64,000 nucleotides of DNA, from the sequence record OP310983.1. The stretch is one strand, 5' to 3'. The notes under the pieces were generated by a model. That model did no database searches. It worked only from the letters and a program-made list of their open reading frames with translations, and was not told where the DNA came from. Shown one piece after another: positions 27,677-37,252 of the stretch (position 1 is its first letter; each line of letters begins with the position of its first letter). The position numbers and the translations under genes were made by a program.

Positions 27677-27769
27677 AAAATAGTAAAAGAAATACACTAT
27701 TCTATGTAGTTCCTTTACGATTGCTCTTTTATCTTAGTTTCAGTTTTGCTGAAGAAGTACCAATGAGAT

Positions 27770-27792
27770 ACCCTCCCCTGATCGGGGAGGGT
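27770..27792 (+). terminator. intrinsic terminator
   Basis: ACCCTCCCC-TGATC-GGGGAGGGT followed by TTTT. Confidence 0.8.
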
Positions 27793-27817
27793 TTTTGACA
27801 TCTAAGAGGAAAATATA

Positions 27818-28198
27818 ATGTGCAAACAACATCGTGTAGTATCTATGAAAGTTACATGCACGCAAGCTCGCTATCCGATCGGTCTGTGCGATCTCGGATT
27901 TGATAATGCTGCTGATGCTCGGCAATATCTATTAGATGTCGTTGAGTACAATATGGATCGTCTCCACCCGCAACATGCTAATACATTCCAGCTACAAAAT
28001 CTACAAGACGGGTTCGTAGTATCCTACGATATCGAAAAAGATGGATCCGTTTATCTTCGGTTAACACTGGCGGCTGTAGCTTATCAATCAATCGATCTTG
28101 AGTTGGGGGTTACCGTTAAAGAAAATGAAGGGATCAGTGTTGTAATCAAAAATTGGATCAATGGTGAGTATACTGCGGGGAACAAATACTTGCAGTAA
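27818..28198 (+). CDS. hypothetical protein
   Basis: GAGGAA RBS. Confidence 0.75.
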   Translation: MCKQHRVVSMKVTCTQARYPIGLCDLGFDNAADARQYLLDVVEYNMDRLHPQHANTFQLQNLQDGFVVSYDIEKDGSVYLRLTLAAVAYQSIDLELGVTVKENEGISVVIKNWINGEYTAGNKYLQ

Positions 28199-28224
28199 TA
28201 CCATATGTAAAGAATACCCAAATC

Positions 28225-28288
28225 GGGATCTCCCGGACTATCTCCCTTCAGCGTTCCCGTCCGCAAATGAAGGTGCCGCCGAGATCCC
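28225..28288. ncRNA. candidate structured RNA: H-type pseudoknot enclosed by an 8-bp helix
   Basis: GGGATCTC/GAGATCCC (28225-32/28281-88), CGGAC/GTCCG (28234-38/28259-63) and CCTTCA/TGAAGG (28245-50/28268-73); GC-rich intergenic stretch. Confidence 0.5.
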
Positions 28289-28301
28289 ACCTATTGATAA
28301 T

Positions 28302-28321
28302 GCCCTCCCTTCGGGGAGGGC
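28302..28321 (+). terminator. intrinsic terminator
   Basis: GCCCTCCC-TTCG-GGGAGGGC. Confidence 0.75.
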
Positions 28322-28364
28322 ATTATTTCGCTTAAGCCTATTTATTTTATTATAAGGAGTGAAA

Positions 28365-29096
28365 ATGACATATATCGTAAATGATGGTAAAGTCATGATT
28401 GCAGACTGCCTATTAATTGAGCGGAATAATGCAACTGATAGCATTGGGCGACTTCCAGTATTAGATAACGGTTATATTGATCTAACTGCTAAAGCTGAAG
28501 GTGTAGATGTATATTACAATGATTGCCACAAGATAATTTTTCATCCGACAGTTACTTGGCAAGGTAAACGTGTTAAAACTATGGCTTTTGCTGGAACTAT
28601 AGATAATGTTTATGATCTATTGAATGCCCTTACCGCAGGTGTTGATTTAGCTGATTGGTTTAAAGTTGAAGTAAATATCTTGCCAGTCATAGAACGCAGG
28701 TTGTTTAATGGTAATACTTCTATGATGTTCACTATGGAGAATGGTGACATATATACAGTTATTCTTAAAGACATGGGTATCAACATCACCAAGAAAGATT
28801 GGGCTCATTTGGGTAGTGGTGTAGATGCAGTTAATAGTGTACTTGAGTTTATCCCTAATTGTAATGATAATGGATCAACCAAACTAACTGCACTTGAAGC
28901 ATTTGCTATTGCATGTGCACATACTACTACTGTAAGTCGTAAATTTGATTATTACATCCATGCTACAGGTGAGTACAAGCAAAATCAAGAACTATCAACT
29001 AAACAACTAAAATGGATACTAGCGCGCATTCAAAAGCGGATGGATCTTACCCGCATTTTCAATGACCGCGAATATGCCAATAACATATGGGGTTGA
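28365..29096 (+). CDS. Ntn-hydrolase (HslV/proteasome beta-like) protein
   Basis: AAGGAG RBS gives M-TYIVNDGKVMIAD (Thr1 after Met removal); FAGT, HLGSG and ALEAFAIAC motifs. Confidence 0.65.
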   Translation: MTYIVNDGKVMIADCLLIERNNATDSIGRLPVLDNGYIDLTAKAEGVDVYYNDCHKIIFHPTVTWQGKRVKTMAFAGTIDNVYDLLNALTAGVDLADWFKVEVNILPVIERRLFNGNTSMMFTMENGDIYTVILKDMGINITKKDWAHLGSGVDAVNSVLEFIPNCNDNGSTKLTALEAFAIACAHTTTVSRKFDYYIHATGEYKQNQELSTKQLKWILARIQKRMDLTRIFNDREYANNIWG

Positions 29097-29617
29097 TTTG
29101 TATGAGTAATTCTAATATGGATATGCTATATTACACTAATGTAAATTGGGAGCAATATTTTCATCATGTGAAACAACGTGCAGATGATACTGTTAAAGTA
29201 ATGTATAAACCTGAATATGAAGATCTTATTGATGAAGCATGTAGGCCATTAATTAAATGGTTTAATCAATTTATCAATGTTGCAACTATTTATTGCTGTT
29301 CAGGCCATGTTGATGAAGAAACTGGTGGTAGCCCTGGATACATTAGTCTTTTATTTAAAGATACCAATGCAGAGAATTCTGCAATGCGTTTATTGCGTGA
29401 AGCAATGTGTAAGGGGCGTGAGTGTAAGATCCCATTCGAAATTGAACTGGGGGCTTATTTCGGGCATCTACATGAGACCATTGATCAGAATCACTGGGTC
29501 GCCAATCTAATCATCCGCACCAATAGCTACAAACGTAAAAATACGTATGATCGCTATTGGCATCGTCTTTACAATATCATAACAACATGTAATACTGAGG
29601 GTTTATACACCGTCTAA
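29087..29617 (+). CDS. TYW3-like (D..I..N...T..CxGH) phage protein
   Basis: IDEACRPLIKWFNQFINVATIYCCSGH. Confidence 0.55.
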   Translation: MGLICMSNSNMDMLYYTNVNWEQYFHHVKQRADDTVKVMYKPEYEDLIDEACRPLIKWFNQFINVATIYCCSGHVDEETGGSPGYISLLFKDTNAENSAMRLLREAMCKGRECKIPFEIELGAYFGHLHETIDQNHWVANLIIRTNSYKRKNTYDRYWHRLYNIITTCNTEGLYTV

Positions 29618-29635
29618 AAAATCTGAGATAATTTA

Positions 29636-29785
29636 ATGAATGATATTAAAAATACATTATTAGTTAGATTAAAGAGGAAACAAAAAGCTAAGCGTATAGA
29701 TAAATTACAAAGACTAGGTTTATGGTTTATTCTATTGCTATGTGTATCTAATCTATTTGTCCAATTAATAAAAGGTATATTCTAA
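29636..29785 (+). CDS. basic, C-terminally hydrophobic microprotein (49 aa, not in track)
   Basis: MNDIKNTLLVRLKRKQKAKRIDKLQRLGLWFILLLCVSNLFVQLIKGIF; stop abuts ATG 29786. Confidence 0.55.
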   Translation: MNDIKNTLLVRLKRKQKAKRIDKLQRLGLWFILLLCVSNLFVQLIKGIF

Positions 29786-31679: not shown

Positions 31680-31757
31680 AATATGATTTACTGAGTCTTT
31701 CACGTTCAATCCCATCCTAACTAATATATTTAAGAATAGTTTAAACCTCAGTAAATT

Positions 31758-31834
31758 TGGTGCCGCCACTCCGAATCGAACGGAGGACCTACGCATTACA
31801 AGTGCGTTGCTCTACCTAGCTGAGCTATAGCGGC
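31758..31834 (-). tRNA. trnT: tRNA-Thr(UGU)
   Basis: Full cloverleaf; anticodon loop CTTGTAA; GTTCGA T-loop; encoded CCA. Confidence 0.97.
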
Positions 31835-31894
31835 GGAATCTTCTACATATAGTGTATATGAAAGTATTATTTTATTATAATAAATAGAGTTATA

Positions 31895-31921
31895 TTCAAA
31901 CTTATTTAAACAGTATATTAT
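31895..31921 (+). promoter_or_regulatory. early promoter (TATATTAT variant)
   Basis: TTCAAACTTATTTAAACAGTATATTATTAACTTGATATT, nearly identical to the promoters at 46761 and 48613. Confidence 0.7.
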
Positions 31922-31977
31922 TAACTTGATATTACTAAATGTAATATTTTCTATTAATTGTAAATAGGATACTAAAT

Positions 31978-32115
31978 ATGAATATTGATCCAAAAACTTT
32001 TGGTATTATTGTTAGCGCCACTATTGGCACCGTAGGTGCTCTTATTCTTACGTATGGTATCGTGAGAGCAGTGCGTGGAAATAATAAACCTGATGTAAAA
32101 GATGTAGCAGAGTAA
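31978..32115 (+). CDS. single-TM microprotein (45 aa, not in track), monocistronic early gene
   Basis: AGGA RBS; MNIDPKTFGIIVSATIGTVGALILTYGIVRAVRGNNKPDVKDVAE; own promoter and terminator. Confidence 0.75.
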   Translation: MNIDPKTFGIIVSATIGTVGALILTYGIVRAVRGNNKPDVKDVAE

Positions 32116-32123
32116 GATAACAT

Positions 32124-32150
32124 AGAGCTAGCCCATTAGGGGCTAGCTCT
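32124..32150. terminator. bidirectional terminator
   Basis: AGAGCTAGCCC-ATTAG-GGGCTAGCTCT. Confidence 0.8.
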
Positions 32151-32173
32151 TATATTTATTTTTTTTATTTGTT

Positions 32174-32800
32174 TTAACTTGGGGTACTATAATAAATAAA
32201 TTTAGTTAATTCGGCTTCTTGCTCTTTGATTATATTATTTTTTGTTTGCTTAACATTAATATAAGATTCAATAGATAGCCAACGCTGATCATATTCGGCT
32301 AAGTCATTGAATTCAATTTTCTCGAATCGCCATGACTGAACAGTGGTTCTAATCAGATTACCTGATTTATTAACAATATAACCTTGCATTGTCTCAAAAA
32401 AGTCATCTGCTTTACTAATAACAATAATTAGATATACATCATCTGTGTTTTTAGTATGCATTGATTTTAATTTATAGACACGTGGGTTAAAAGAATCAAT
32501 ATCTTTATAATGTTCTTTGATTTCTAGAACAGCATCAATCATCATCTTGGCGCTATTTTGAATACCGTTATTAAGTAGATATTCATTAAGTTCTTTTAAT
32601 GAGTCATCACTCAATGATGCTTCGATATGTTCTTCACTTATAGGGTAGTGATAAACTAATTTATTAATAGCTGAATTAACAACATTTAGTTTATCAACAT
32701 CATAAACTTCTAATGTTTGCTTGCCAACTTTTATTTTTAATCCTTTATTTGAATCATTAATAAAGTTGTCTAGATCTACTTCAGTAAAATGAAAAGCCAT
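32174..32800 (-). CDS. hypothetical protein
   Basis: AAGGTGA RBS before MAFHF (start moved from 32842). Confidence 0.75.
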   Translation of the reverse strand: MAFHFTEVDLDNFINDSNKGLKIKVGKQTLEVYDVDKLNVVNSAINKLVYHYPISEEHIEASLSDDSLKELNEYLLNNGIQNSAKMMIDAVLEIKEHYKDIDSFNPRVYKLKSMHTKNTDDVYLIIVISKADDFFETMQGYIVNKSGNLIRTTVQSWRFEKIEFNDLAEYDQRWLSIESYINVKQTKNNIIKEQEAELTKFIYYSTPS

Positions 32801-32937
32801 TTTAATCACCTTTATGTTTTCCGTAGTGAAGTGAATAAACACACACCCGGTTTCTGGTTAGGATAAAGTATGGTTAATCCATACATAATAAAATACGCAA
32901 GAGTATTAAATTAAAAAAACTAATATAACCTGATAAA

Positions 32938-32960
32938 AACCCTCCCATAATGGGAGGGTT
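32938..32960 (-). terminator. intrinsic terminator
   Basis: AACCCTCCC-ATAAT-GGGAGGGTT. Confidence 0.75.
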
Positions 32961-32964
32961 ATAA

Positions 32965-33423
32965 TTAGCTTTTAAGAACAGGTTTTAATATTAGATAAAT
33001 ATAGCAGTTAGCAGTAACTGTGGTTTCAACTACTTTACCATCACTATCGATTGCTAAAAGATTAGATGGATTATTAGTGGATACAGTTGATGATAGTATT
33101 TTATACGAATCTGCTAATCGGATACTAATTAAAGGGCGTTGAGTACGTTTAACTCGACTACAGAAGAATGTTAAAAGGTATTCAGTACACTCTTCTATAG
33201 TAGGTATACTAACCTCCCAAGTAACATCCTGCATTTCGATATTACGACCTTGTTGAACAGGGCCTCCTAAAGCAGTTATCATTGCACTTGGTAACTTATC
33301 AGTCATGTCACCGGAAGACGCCATTAAACCAGCTTGATATATAGTTACAGCACTAACTAAATATATTGACGCTGTATCGAAAAGAGCTATGTATTTATCG
33401 CCAATCCCATATGTTACTGGCAC
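32965..33423 (-). CDS. hypothetical protein
   Basis: 152 aa; frame is open further upstream, so start is uncertain. Confidence 0.7.
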   Translation of the reverse strand: MPVTYGIGDKYIALFDTASIYLVSAVTIYQAGLMASSGDMTDKLPSAMITALGGPVQQGRNIEMQDVTWEVSIPTIEECTEYLLTFFCSRVKRTQRPLISIRLADSYKILSSTVSTNNPSNLLAIDSDGKVVETTVTANCYIYLILKPVLKS

Positions 33424-33602
33424 CGCATCTAAATCGGCAAACTTAATAGGTTTACCAGGAGTAGCCGCAATTAATGAATGGGTTGGTTTATTTTCTGGAA
33501 CATATGTTTTAGTTAAATGACATACACAAAGCCATTTTTATGACTTCGCGTATGCGTGGCACGTATCTATTAAGATGATACAACTTCATATCATAACAAC
33601 AT

Positions 33603-33627
33603 AAAGCCCTCCGTGATGGAGGGCTTT
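33603..33627 (-). terminator. intrinsic terminator
   Basis: AAAGCCCTCC-GTGAT-GGAGGGCTTT. Confidence 0.75.
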
Positions 33628-33644
33628 TATTTTATTTTTATACT

Positions 33645-34169
33645 TTAACTAAAACGAACTACAATTACACTAGTACCAAAAGTATCAGCTACCCACTGAT
33701 TAAATTCTTTATCAGTAATACCTCGTAAATTCAGATTATAAGATGCGTTATCTACAAGTATATAGCGGATATCTGAAAGTAAATTTTCATTAAAGTCTTT
33801 CTGGATCGTTGATAGTCCAGATTTATGGATATAGCTACGTAGTTTAAATGTAGTTAAATATGGAATAATGTTATCTGGTGTTTTGGATAGTTTATCTTGA
33901 GCACCACGTCGAATTCTTTCGTCGGTGAATACTGCCAAACATTCACCAGGGTAGCGTTTTGAAAATTCCATTAATGCTGTAGTACTACCAGATTGACGAC
34001 CAATAAAAAACCCTACTGTTCTATGATCACGTATAGTGATATGACTGACATCATTAAGATGATAATGCATCCCATACTTATTCCAATTCTCATTAGTTTT
34101 ATATATCAATGCATCCAGGATAGCCTGGTAATCAACAATAGTTTTTACAAACTGATTTGTGTTATTCAT
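33645..34169 (-). CDS. stand-alone degenerate P-loop (terminase-ATPase-like) protein
   Basis: GFFIGRQSGSTT (compare RQxGKT/S) and RYILVDNA (compare Walker B hhhhDE). Confidence 0.55.
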   Translation of the reverse strand: MNNTNQFVKTIVDYQAILDALIYKTNENWNKYGMHYHLNDVSHITIRDHRTVGFFIGRQSGSTTALMEFSKRYPGECLAVFTDERIRRGAQDKLSKTPDNIIPYLTTFKLRSYIHKSGLSTIQKDFNENLLSDIRYILVDNASYNLNLRGITDKEFNQWVADTFGTSVIVVRFS

Positions 34170-34320
34170 TATAGAAGTTCCTTTATTACAATGTAGTATA
34201 TAACCTTTATTAAATTAGGTTATATACCGGCTATGGAAAAGGCCTCGTCACCTTCCCTTCACCTATATTAAATATCAATAGTGGTTATAAAGAACGAGAT
34301 ACACTCATTGACATAATATA

Positions 34321-34343
34321 GCCAGGGGTGGCAAACCCCTGGC
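34321..34343 (-). terminator. intrinsic terminator-like hairpin
   Basis: GCCAGGGGT-GGCAA-ACCCCTGGC. Confidence 0.7.
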
Positions 34344-34460
34344 ATTCAGACACACTCTATAATTAAATCTACCACCGAGTGTATTTAGTGGATAGCTTTA
34401 GGATTATCTAGATAAAGTAATCCTACATAATATCATCGCACTAGTATTTTTATCTTTAGT

Positions 34461-35468
34461 TTAATCGAGAACTAATGGGGCTACTTTAACTTGATATATA
34501 CCAGTTAATAATTGGCTTTTCAACATATATGCTCCACCACCAACCGCCATTTTAGATCCACCTACAATGATCATGCTATTATCCGGACCTTTAGCTATAG
34601 ATGAAATATTAAGGAATCCGATACCTAGTTCAAATGGTTCAGCCCATTTCCGGCGCCTAATATTAAAACGTTGTGCAAACATTTTAGTTACACCGCCGAC
34701 ATCAACAGCGTTAAGGTAATTAAAATAGTCCCCATCTACATAACCATTACCTTGCCAGATTGTTCCTTTATCAGCAGGTATAATCATCCAAGGTGTTTGC
34801 TCCCATATTAAGGTAGTTGCATTATATCGATAAACTTCAAGATTAGGTATGTTCTTTGTATTATCCCAACCACCAAAATGGTAAAAGTAACCATTATAAA
34901 AGAATAACTGTTGACCTGAACGAGCACCACCTGAATAGTCTTGCCCGCTAAGCCAAGACTTACTTGATGGTTTTAATCGCATTGCGTTTACGCCAATTGG
35001 GTTAACGCATAGAATAAGATCATTACCATCTGATGCGGAGGCTGTGCCCCAAAGTGGTACGGGACCACTATATCGCTCAACCCTATTGCCTGTAGCTATA
35101 TCAAAATGTTGTATAAAGTTAGATGTTCCCGTACCACCATTACCAGCCGAGTTCCATCCAGTAATACCGCCATAAACAATAAAGTTATTCTTATGTAATG
35201 TCCCAAATCCTAAAGATACCCCTGGTAAGAATGTTCCAGAAGCAGTTGCACCTATATCGGCAAATGGCGATATGGTAAAACGTCTGAACACAGTTGCAGC
35301 TGTTTGTCCTTCAGTATGATGACCAGATCCAACATACAGTGTATTTCCATCCACATATGACATTGTACCAGCTAACGCTACAGGTAGATCACCTAATTTA
35401 ATAATTTCATTAAATCCAACCAAGGGTAACTCTTCGCCTATATCTGGCGATAATAGTAATTCAAACAT
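34461..35468 (-). CDS. Kelch-like beta-propeller protein, probable virion protein (gp298-like by position)
   Basis: Repeated hhhhGG motifs: LYVGSG, FIVYGG, FYHFGGWD, MIIVGG. Confidence 0.7.
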   Translation of the reverse strand: MFELLLSPDIGEELPLVGFNEIIKLGDLPVALAGTMSYVDGNTLYVGSGHHTEGQTAATVFRRFTISPFADIGATASGTFLPGVSLGFGTLHKNNFIVYGGITGWNSAGNGGTGTSNFIQHFDIATGNRVERYSGPVPLWGTASASDGNDLILCVNPIGVNAMRLKPSSKSWLSGQDYSGGARSGQQLFFYNGYFYHFGGWDNTKNIPNLEVYRYNATTLIWEQTPWMIIPADKGTIWQGNGYVDGDYFNYLNAVDVGGVTKMFAQRFNIRRRKWAEPFELGIGFLNISSIAKGPDNSMIIVGGSKMAVGGGAYMLKSQLLTGIYQVKVAPLVLD

Positions 35469-35522
35469 GAGTGTGCTCTCAAGTAAATCATTTTAATTCA
35501 TAAGATAACCCATGGCAACATA

Positions 35523-35546
35523 AAAGAGTAGCCGAAGCTACTCTTT
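35523..35546 (-). terminator. terminator downstream of tRNA-Asp/Asn
   Basis: AAAGAGTAGC-CGAA-GCTACTCTTT. Confidence 0.8.
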
Positions 35547-35552
35547 AGAATA

Positions 35553-35628
<76 letters not shown>

Positions 35629-35634
35629 ATTAAA

Positions 35635-35711
35635 TGGCGCGCCCAAGGGGACTCGAACCCCTGACCACCCGCGTGACAGGCGGGTATTCTAACCAACTGA
35701 ACTATGAGCGC
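35635..35711 (-). tRNA. trnD: tRNA-Asp(GUC)
   Basis: Cloverleaf; loop CTGTCAC; encoded CCA. Confidence 0.97.
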
Positions 35712-35763
35712 AAACGTATGGACATGACTTCCTACATAGTATTACATAACCAGTAATATTTTA

Positions 35764-36111
35764 TTACGGGCGATCAGTCCAGTGCTTGAAATAGTTACCA
35801 TCCTTGGGACGATCGTACTTAGCAAGAATATTTTTAAGTTCTTCGCCGGACAACTTAATACTATCGCCTACTGGGCTATCCAGTTCAGGGCAAGGTTCAG
35901 TTTTACGTGTAATGATTAAATTATCAGTCCCATCTTTGAAGATAAAGATAAACTGCGTTTCATTAGCACTAATCTTTTTCTTAACGCAATGCTTTACTTC
36001 TGGATGTTTCTTGTGGATCGTTACAAAAGATTCAACAAGAGTTAGCTTTATAAACTCAGGGCTAATAAATGTGAAATATACAGCGCTCTGCGTTGGGGTT
36101 AGATGATCCAT
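35764..36111 (-). CDS. hypothetical protein
   Basis: GGAG RBS. Confidence 0.75.
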   Translation of the reverse strand: MDHLTPTQSAVYFTFISPEFIKLTLVESFVTIHKKHPEVKHCVKKKISANETQFIFIFKDGTDNLIITRKTEPCPELDSPVGDSIKLSGEELKNILAKYDRPKDGNYFKHWTDRP

Positions 36112-36113
36112 AT

Positions 36114-36401
36114 TTACTCCGTATGTTTGAGATAGGCTTTAACTGCTTTAAGACCTTTATTAAAGAACATAGCTTCAACATAAGTAATGTTACTTACATC
36201 CTCGCCGATAAGTTCCCATTTGATGTAACGTGTAACAGCGTTGATTGTAATATCTAATCCGTTTGGGAATAGGGTTACTTCATCGGTCAGGTGAATCCAA
36301 TCGGGAGCCTTCGCTCCATTACGTAAACGGGGACTAAAAGTAAGATTATAAAGTGTTTGTAATGGTTGTCTCAATAGTTCTTTTTGTTCTTGATGTTCCA
36401 T
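36114..36401 (-). CDS. hypothetical protein
   Basis: AGGAA RBS before MEHQEQ (start moved from 36419). Confidence 0.7.
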   Translation of the reverse strand: MEHQEQKELLRQPLQTLYNLTFSPRLRNGAKAPDWIHLTDEVTLFPNGLDITINAVTRYIKWELIGEDVSNITYVEAMFFNKGLKAVKAYLKHTE

Positions 36402-36409
36402 GTATTTTC

Positions 36410-36631
36410 CTAGAGACATTTAAAAATATAAATAGAATGGTTATCTCTTTCGGTTATCTTTAGAGTATTCTCATTTCGAATAACTTCAAGAGACTTGTAT
36501 TTATGTTCCAGAATATCCAGATGAGAAATACACTGTTCCCTATTTTCAAATAGGATATTACTTTCATTAGTCGAAATGAAACCAAATAATCCAACTTTGA
36601 TAGATAATACCAACATTATTACTGTATTCAT
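36410..36631 (-). CDS. small exported/membrane protein
   Basis: GAGGAA RBS before MNTVIMLVLSIKVGLFG; FENREQC motif. Confidence 0.65.
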   Translation of the reverse strand: MNTVIMLVLSIKVGLFGFISTNESNILFENREQCISHLDILEHKYKSLEVIRNENTLKITERDNHSIYIFKCL

Positions 36632-36683
36632 GTTTTCCTCAATGAGACAGTATAAAACCTCCCCCAAGTGGGAGGCTAGTATA

Positions 36684-36760
36684 TGGTGGGCCCAGCAGGA
36701 CTTGAACCTGCGACCAAGCGATTATGAGTCGCCTGCTCTAACCAACTGAGCTATAGGCCC
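36684..36760 (-). tRNA. tRNA(CAU), most likely Ile2 (lysidine, reads AUA) rather than Met
   Basis: Cloverleaf; GGCGA-CTCATAA-TCGCT arm and C4-G69/C5-G68 pairs as in enterobacterial ileX; lacks the initiator GGG/CCC anticodon stem and C1:A72 mismatch. Confidence 0.9.
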
Positions 36761-36767
36761 TTTTTAT

Positions 36768-37061
36768 TTATTCTGGTAAGAATGTTCCATCTTTTTGACG
36801 GACTAATACACCTGACCATTTGAATGTATTTGTATCACTAGCAGGGCACTCTCTAATTACATTGGTTCTAAATGTGCCATGTGGATAGGTTACAGTGAAT
36901 GTAATATGGTTATTACAAACATGTAATACAGAAGACTTTGCTTCTGTTAGATAGTGTAAGCCTTGAGCTAATTGAATATTAGTTAATTCAGGGTCACTAA
37001 GAATAGCGTAAAGAGCTGTTCCTATAATTTGATGTTCCCATGATATCCATTTATTATCCAT
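36768..37061 (-). CDS. hypothetical protein between tRNAs
   Basis: AGGA RBS. Confidence 0.7.
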   Translation of the reverse strand: MDNKWISWEHQIIGTALYAILSDPELTNIQLAQGLHYLTEAKSSVLHVCNNHITFTVTYPHGTFRTNVIRECPASDTNTFKWSGVLVRQKDGTFLPE

Positions 37062-37082
37062 CCTATTTACCTATTATTAAAA

Positions 37083-37158
37083 TGGTCGGAGTGGGGAGAC
37101 TCGAACTCCCGACATCCTGCTCCCAAAGCAGGCGCGCTACCAACTGCGCTACACTCCG
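37083..37158 (-). tRNA. trnP: tRNA-Pro(UGG)
   Basis: Cloverleaf; loop TTTGGGA; encoded CCA. Confidence 0.97.
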
Positions 37159-37167
37159 TATTTAAAT

Positions 37168-37252
37168 TGGTGCCCGAAGTCGGATTCGAACCGACAAGAC
37201 CGTAGCCGGAAGATTTTAAGTCTTCTGTGTTTACCAATTTCACCATTCGGGC
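37168..37252 (-). tRNA. trnL: tRNA-Leu(UAA)
   Basis: Cloverleaf with long variable arm; loop CTTAAAA; encoded CCA. Confidence 0.97.

Follow-up and report, generated by a model that had tools for sequence, protein, structure and literature searches.

A short non-coding RNA of giant Pseudomonas phages, about 120 nt in length, carries a structured core that folds as a rod of four nested helices and is conserved well beyond the genus of phiKZ. The reading favored here, at a probability of about 0.5, is that it acts as a discrete, stand-alone phage RNA whose nested-rod core would hold its loops ready for a conserved partner, with coupling to the downstream protein gp289 being secondary. The nucleus-forming giant phages are closely studied, but their non-coding RNAs are almost unknown. 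The 120-nt transcript was already known; the family, the fold, the invariant bases and the long form are new with respect to Rfam and the literature searched. One entry in a transcript list becomes a defined RNA family with a covariation-backed fold, invariant bases, and short and long forms, which gives experimenters a concrete object to probe. The family is found in many lineages of Pseudomonas giant phages, including several named genera, unclassified phages and uncultured contigs, and the RNA is filed as a phage-encoded small RNA or leader RNA.

An initial annotation of the same DNA, made from the letters alone, had proposed an undescribed structured RNA with a pseudoknot. The structured RNA is borne out, as the element is conserved, lies on the plus strand and has a fold supported by covariation. 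The word undescribed holds for the fold, the family-wide conservation and the long form, none of which is present in the literature searched, but not for the 120-nt transcript, which was catalogued in 2023/2024. The pseudoknot is replaced by nested helices, and this correction spares effort on ribozyme or antitoxin assays.

Genomic Context

The window, meaning the whole stretch of 64,000 nucleotides from sequence record OP310983.1 that was analyzed, is identified by its sequence as part of a Phikzvirus genome. The 1-kb stretch around the element is 100% identical to KTN4, fnug, Koomba boorn-mokiny kep-wari Wadjak 1 and Pa_AttikonH10, and 98.8% identical to phiKZ. In phiKZ coordinates, window position 28196 is 263160, and the two sequences are identical across 28196-28295. 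The element is located between the stop codon of PHIKZ288 (28196-28198) and a terminator with a TTCG loop (28299-28324), as the initial annotation had stated. According to the open reading frame (ORF) list and the phiKZ annotation, PHIKZ288 (27818-28198, plus strand) encodes a protein of 126 aa with no assigned function. On the other side, PHIKZ289 (28365-29096, plus strand; 243 aa) is reached through read-through of the terminator.

The product of PHIKZ289, gp289, had been called an Ntn-hydrolase. The position of its gene, starting at 28365 just downstream of the element, is as described, but the Ntn-hydrolase label is a weak one, as all that supports it is a weak match, in PHROG, to an HslV-family peptidase (E 5e-5). 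No match to gp289 was obtained in Pfam, or in the PDB by sequence, and a profile of eight homologs searched against the PDB gave no solved structure. The N-terminal Met-Thr varies in the gp289 family, and position 2 is Ser in PhiPA3. Functional data on PHIKZ288, PHIKZ289 or the RNA were not found in the antisense-oligomer paper, in the transposon paper or by an interactome search, and a literature search returned no binding data for the RNA, for Hfq or for other proteins.

Other non-coding RNAs are also present in the window. Six tRNA genes (Thr, Asn, Asp, Met, Pro and Leu) are clustered on the minus strand at 31758-37252, approximately 3.4 kb downstream; tRNA finders (ARAGORN and Rfam) detected these six elsewhere in the window and none at the element. 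Another published ncRNA candidate, 89 nt in length and running from phiKZ promoter P129 to terminator T118, precedes PHIKZ288 at about 27707-27796 on the plus strand, and a weak Rfam match to 'Phe_leader' at the same positions is driven by the terminator of that candidate. The Rfam scan that had been proposed for the element gave no family, either in the window or in the relatives: the sole overlap in the window is below threshold and driven by the terminator. Beyond the element, the Rfam searches returned only tRNAs and chance matches from the terminator.

Transcript, Promoter and Terminator

The existence of a discrete RNA and its strand, which had been left for experiments to decide, is answered by published ONT-cappable-seq data on phiKZ, in which the locus yields a plus-strand transcript of 120 nt, TU198. 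Its start site, belonging to promoter P130, was mapped at phiKZ 263172 on the plus strand, corresponding to window position 28208 (Putzeys et al., bioRxiv 10.1101/2023.10.13.562163, microLife 2024, PMC10914365). P130 is a middle-class promoter at 28184-28207 (plus strand), with an upstream block from 28184 and a TATG at 28204-28207 that abuts the start site. It has been published that the phiKZ non-virion RNA polymerase requires TATG and that initiation takes place at the last base of the motif. The termination site, T119, was mapped at phiKZ 263292 on the plus strand, or window position ~28328 (Putzeys et al., PMC10914365). The primary transcript therefore covers about 28208-28328 on the plus strand, approximately 120 nt in total, and consists of a leader, the structured core, a tail and the terminator. 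T119 itself (28299-28329, plus strand) was recognized by reading the sequence and by a terminator scan; it has an 11-bp stem, a TTCG loop and a T-rich tail, and fits the published phiKZ terminator motif. In phage T2P, the terminator stem has changes at paired positions, with complementarity retained.

The supplement of the preprint lists TU198 as a 120-nt unit with no annotated feature inside and with read-through extending over PHIKZ289, and its Table S7 contains the RNA as a "5'UTR-derived" ncRNA candidate of PHIKZ289, with an empty validation column (bioRxiv 10.1101/2023.10.13.562163). Such candidates have a mapped start and termination site, a transcript shorter than 250 nt and no ORF with a ribosome-binding site (Putzeys et al.). 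The RNA in the window belongs to this group, given its listing in Table S7 and the identity of the window with phiKZ over 28196-28295. The layout of promoter, short RNA, terminator and gene is shared by 17 candidates in phiKZ. Since it is common in this phage, the production of a short RNA alone is no evidence for a function in trans. Having its own promoter and a factor-independent terminator, the RNA is built as a trans-acting base-pairing small RNA is, and the succession of structured leader, intrinsic terminator and gene is equally that of a terminator-controlled 5' leader. Transcripts from P128 and P129 that span PHIKZ288 (TU195/TU197) also stop at T119 (bioRxiv 10.1101/2023.10.13.562163), so that PHIKZ288 messages, too, have the element at their 3' end.

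Conservation and Distribution

The element is kept at 99% identity or more in all 42 close relatives of phiKZ. T2P and three sister phages are mosaic with respect to the window: over most of the 45 kb compared, identity is 96-100%, while a patch of 1.85 kb (window 27900-29750) has 71-89% identity per 100 nt. Within this patch, 28200-28299 is 96% identical. The patch covers PHIKZ288-290, with the RNA as a conserved island inside, and has the look of a segment recombined in from a more distant relative. The substitutions in the RNA within the genus are at 28216, 28217, 28266 (two independent changes), 28280 and 28291; every one of them is unpaired and also variable in the wider family. Both the helices and particular unpaired bases are under purifying selection.

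Homologs in the same genomic position comprise at least 18 distinct sequences, including those of T2P, RVTF4, D6, Psa21, PhiPA3, PA1C, HPP-Temi, 201phi2-1, Viktualia and Phabio. Several uncultured contigs, each about 300 kb long, joined them through a block-pattern scan of IMG/VR. Several routes led to these homologs. BLAST with the 100-nt element finds Phikzvirus only, and scanning IMG/VR for exact 21-mers yields one PA7-like contig. The elements of RVTF4, D6 and Psa21 were located by inspecting the sequence upstream of gp289 homologs, that of Viktualia was detected by a covariance model, and those of 201phi2-1 and Phabio were reached by BLAST from Viktualia, whereas PhiPA3, PA1C, HPP-Temi and more contigs were reached through the synteny of gp287 homologs. 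A block-pattern scan of metagenomes gave 21 stretches, of which only two are real, both being copies of a known type, and the others fail the covariance model. The same kind of scan in 185,579 bacterial and archaeal genomes (one per species) gave 17 stretches, none of them real and none from Pseudomonas; a host origin or a host copy is therefore unsupported at that stringency.

The surroundings of the element are constant on one side and variable on the other. It is always found downstream of a gp287 homolog and after an identical promoter layout, and a phiKZ-type terminator always follows, directly or beyond extra non-coding sequence. PHIKZ288 is confined to Phikzvirus, whereas the element is far more widespread. 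A gp289 homolog is present downstream in nine of the 11 named lineages (phiKZ, T2P, RVTF4, D6, Psa21, PhiPA3, PA1C, HPP-Temi and Viktualia). In RVTF4, D6 and Psa21, the first downstream gene encodes a small membrane protein. In 201phi2-1 and Phabio, it encodes a small basic protein, and the stretch examined contains no gp289 homolog.

Fold of the Structured Core

The 64-nt core (28225-28288, plus strand) has a GC content of 62.5%, a value reached by just 0.05% of 64-nt windows, compared with 36.6% for the window as a whole; the description of a GC-rich element in an AT-rich genome is thus accurate. Minimum-energy folds and covariation together define the core as a rod of four nested helices on the plus strand. 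P1 (28225-32/28281-88) closes the rod, and inside it lie P2 (28234-36/28276-78), P3 (28245-50/28268-73) and P4 (28251-53/28262-64), with both P2 and P4 covarying. The nested fold is the RNAfold optimum for the window sequence, with a z-score of about -3 for the core, and in the minimum-energy structure the core and the terminator are two independent domains.

The same rod is recovered in the relatives. When the relatives are folded individually, 11 of the 12 have it as their minimum-energy structure and the twelfth as its centroid. In a model-guided alignment of the 18 distinct sequences, standard pairs occupy 94.9% of the cells and changes on both sides are seen in 18 of 21 pairs (95 cells); because the covariation alignments were fitted to the model, these counts lean towards it, a bias that is guarded against by the single-sequence folds, which were made independently. 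For these 18 sequences, the covariation score is 0.658 compared with 0.218 in shuffles, with none of 500 shuffles reaching the observed value, and it drops to 0.12 or less once the partners are slid. An alignment of 13 sequences gives covariation in agreement with this result. A few G-U pairs, which are strand-specific, occur on the plus strand.

The core is therefore composed of four nested helices and is not a pseudoknot. The initial annotation had drawn three perfect helices in the order A-B-C-B'-C'-A', and all three are indeed present in the window: A (8 bp) is P1, C (6 bp) is P3, and B (28234-38/28259-63, 5 bp) crosses C. Across the homologs, covariation supports A and C but not B. No compensatory pairs are seen in helix B, whose pairing in the relatives is 45-79%; two of its pairs are formed by invariant bases, one being already taken up by the covarying P2, and the other three are broken in most sequences. 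Its 5' strand pairs instead with 28276-78 in P2, and part of its 3' strand with 28251-53 in P4. With A and C taken as given, 6% of composition-preserving shuffles produce a crossing helix of 5 bp or more. A crossing pair of 5 + 6 bp arises in only 0.7% of whole-interior shuffles, a figure that is carried by the real helix C.

Judged from the alignment, the RNA presents three conserved patches of unpaired bases on a covarying scaffold. The first is an asymmetric 8 × 2 internal loop, of which the 5' side (28237-28244, 8 nt) faces 28274-28275, the second is the apical loop (28254-28261, 8 nt), and the third is the single-stranded 3' tail between P1 and the terminator (28289-28295), all on the plus strand. 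Positions identical in 18 of 18 sequences are 28225, 28236, 28240-28244, 28246, 28272, 28274-28276, 28288 and 28292. In addition, a string search finds the six apical-loop bases 28256-28261 in all 18, and the tail has a per-position identity of 12-18 of 18. Both the internal loop and the apical loop are C-rich. Motifs of six bases are too short for a meaningful target search.

The Long Form

In several phages, the element is part of a larger RNA. PA1C, HPP-Temi, PhiPA3, 201phi2-1, Viktualia and several uncultured contigs have approximately 280-330 nt of extra sequence between the element and the terminator. The resulting long form is ~420-540 nt in length, with conserved blocks and covarying hairpins 3' of the element, and was delimited at loci L049 (7333-7740), L048 (7214-7625), L046 (2411-2920; 201phi2-1) and L010 (2505-3020; Viktualia), as well as at L068, L070, L071 and L073. 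Members of the 201phi2-1 group have additional hairpins 5' of the element as well, which brings their RNA to roughly 0.5 kb. The phiKZ-like phage KEN49 (vB_Pae3705-KEN49) has 281 extra bases between element and terminator (locus L002, 1992-2272), at the place of window 28290-28298. This insert is unique among phage records by BLAST, and it has short blocks in common with the ~300-nt domain of PA1C, HPP-Temi, PhiPA3, 201phi2-1 and Viktualia. MAFFT and RNAalifold give a partial fold only for the 3' domain of the long form, and Rfam has no match to it.

Several annotated genes overlap the RNA or its long form: the start of gp425 in 201phi2-1 (L046, 2858), CDS0139 in Viktualia (L010, 2586-2867) and KEN49_CDS0069 (L002, 1862-2044). 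A 44-codon ORF is also annotated on the KEN49 insert. A comparison with locus L068 places the true start of the gp425-type protein beyond the terminator. The protein genes annotated over the RNA or the long form are probably mis-called, and several protein annotations are hereby flagged as probably sitting on RNA.

In a further, tentative reading, the element could be the shared core domain of a modular RNA peculiar to giant phages, short (~120 nt, as in phiKZ) or long (~420-540 nt, in 201phi2-1, Viktualia, PhiPA3, PA1C, HPP-Temi and KEN49), that works as an RNA machine or an RNA-protein particle with a conserved partner from the cell or the phage. By analogy, such an RNA might be of the same sort as the large ornate RNAs that occur close to phage tRNA genes, and not an ordinary leader; this likeness is put forward with the same reserve.

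Possible Functions

The phage non-virion RNA polymerase starts the RNA at the middle promoter right after the stop codon of PHIKZ288, and the standard phiKZ intrinsic terminator ends it. Some polymerases pass the terminator into PHIKZ289, so that the RNA doubles as the 5' leader of gp289. P1 to P4 stack as a rod that fixes the three invariant unpaired patches in place. Beyond the transcript, its strand, its fold and its conservation, which are shown, we infer a mechanism in which this rod would be a scaffold presenting the invariant loops to a putative conserved partner, either an RNA paired through a G-rich sequence or a protein, and coupling to gp289 by partial termination would be secondary. 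A stand-alone RNA is favored by the presence of its own promoter and terminator everywhere, by the variable adjacent gene, and by a terminator that is uncoupled from the element: the terminator stems differ freely among relatives and are ~300 nt away in the long forms. As a gp289 homolog is found downstream in nine of the 11 named lineages, a role in cis also fits.

Such a role would be that of a cis-acting attenuator, riboswitch-like or factor-dependent, which sets the read-through of T119 into the gp289 operon. This reading is considered unlikely, even though the order of start site, structured domain, intrinsic terminator, ribosome-binding site and gene corresponds to it, terminated and read-through transcripts have both been reported (Putzeys et al.), and most lineages have the gp289 homolog downstream. 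Aptamers likewise show invariant loops in a covarying scaffold. However, the minimum-energy structure has the element and the terminator as separate folding units, and neither inspection by eye nor a fold of the full transcript reveals an antiterminator or any stretch of the element that resembles the 3' half of the terminator. Among relatives, the terminator stems change without a matched change in the element, approximately 300 nt of other structured RNA lies in between in the long-form phages, the downstream gene in 201phi2-1 and Phabio is unrelated, and no riboswitch in Rfam matches.

The element could also serve PHIKZ288, as a 3'-end structure of its mRNA that protects against exonucleases or gives a small RNA derived from the 3' UTR. 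The transcripts from P128 and P129 that cross PHIKZ288 and end at T119 are in line with this. Nevertheless, a conserved promoter directly upstream in every lineage means that the RNA always has its own start, PHIKZ288 exists only in Phikzvirus while the element is found more widely, and a simple protective hairpin needs no invariant loops, which makes this role quite improbable.

It is very improbable that the conserved feature is not an RNA at all, being instead a DNA-level site (a recombination linker or a nuclease target) or a small protein-coding ORF. The conserved island between diverged T2P segments could also be produced by a recombination junction, and ORFs overlapping the element are annotated in some genome records, but the compensatory changes keep pairing and not sequence or reading frame, the G-U pairs are strand-specific and the transcript has been mapped. 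A 22-codon ORF inside the RNA was considered and rejected, as it is shortened to 10 codons in T2P and is not conserved. A likeness to tRNA was rejected as well: the family model matches tRNA-Thr at E 0.57, mainly via the common promoter type. This tRNA-Thr (window 31752-31872, minus strand) is preceded by that promoter type and by a comparable short leader, with P1 aligned to the acceptor stem and ACC after both.

An H-type pseudoknot of B crossing C nested in A is scarcely credible, whether it is meant to sense a ligand, to form a nuclease-resistant end, to mimic an antitoxin or to act as a ribozyme: A, B and C are all perfect in the window, but B is not compensated in relatives, where the competing P2 and P4 covary, ribozyme and riboswitch models in Rfam have no match, and the element is present in a single copy per genome, with no repeat array and no toxin-family match in the neighboring genes.

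Comparison with Known Systems

The candidate reported upstream of PHIKZ289 by Putzeys et al. (TU198, PMC10914365) is the same locus and the same molecule, with phiKZ 263172-263292 corresponding to window 28208-28328. That work gives its coordinates, length and RNAfold energy, but no northern blot, fold, cross-genus conservation or long form. A similar arrangement is described in the main text of PMC11512511 for sRNA005 of 201phi2-1 and the phiKZ small RNA upstream of gp182, which are short RNAs between a promoter and a terminator before a gene and whose position, like that of the element, is conserved among giant Pseudomonas phages. They differ from the element in locus, sequence and neighboring gene; conservation of the present element is not reported in that main text.

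Attenuating leaders and riboswitches resemble the element in having a structured domain between the start site and an intrinsic terminator, and invariant unpaired bases in a covarying scaffold. They differ from it in that the element has no conserved antiterminator and no Rfam family, and its terminator evolves independently and can be 300 nt away.

H-type pseudoknot RNAs include ToxI (a type III antitoxin), the preQ1-I and SAM-II aptamers and the phage T4 gene 32 operator. Type III toxin-antitoxin RNAs are encoded as a tandem array of short repeats beside an endoribonuclease toxin gene. The A-B-C-B'-C'-A' order that would link the element to these RNAs can be drawn in the window alone; relatives do not keep the crossing helix, and no repeat array, toxin gene or model match was found.

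In the RsaE/RoxS RNAs of Firmicutes, C-rich loops pair with G-rich ribosome-binding sites. The element has no sequence relationship to RsaE/RoxS, but by analogy it may be likened to them, as it has its own promoter and terminator and displays invariant C-rich unpaired patches on stable helices.
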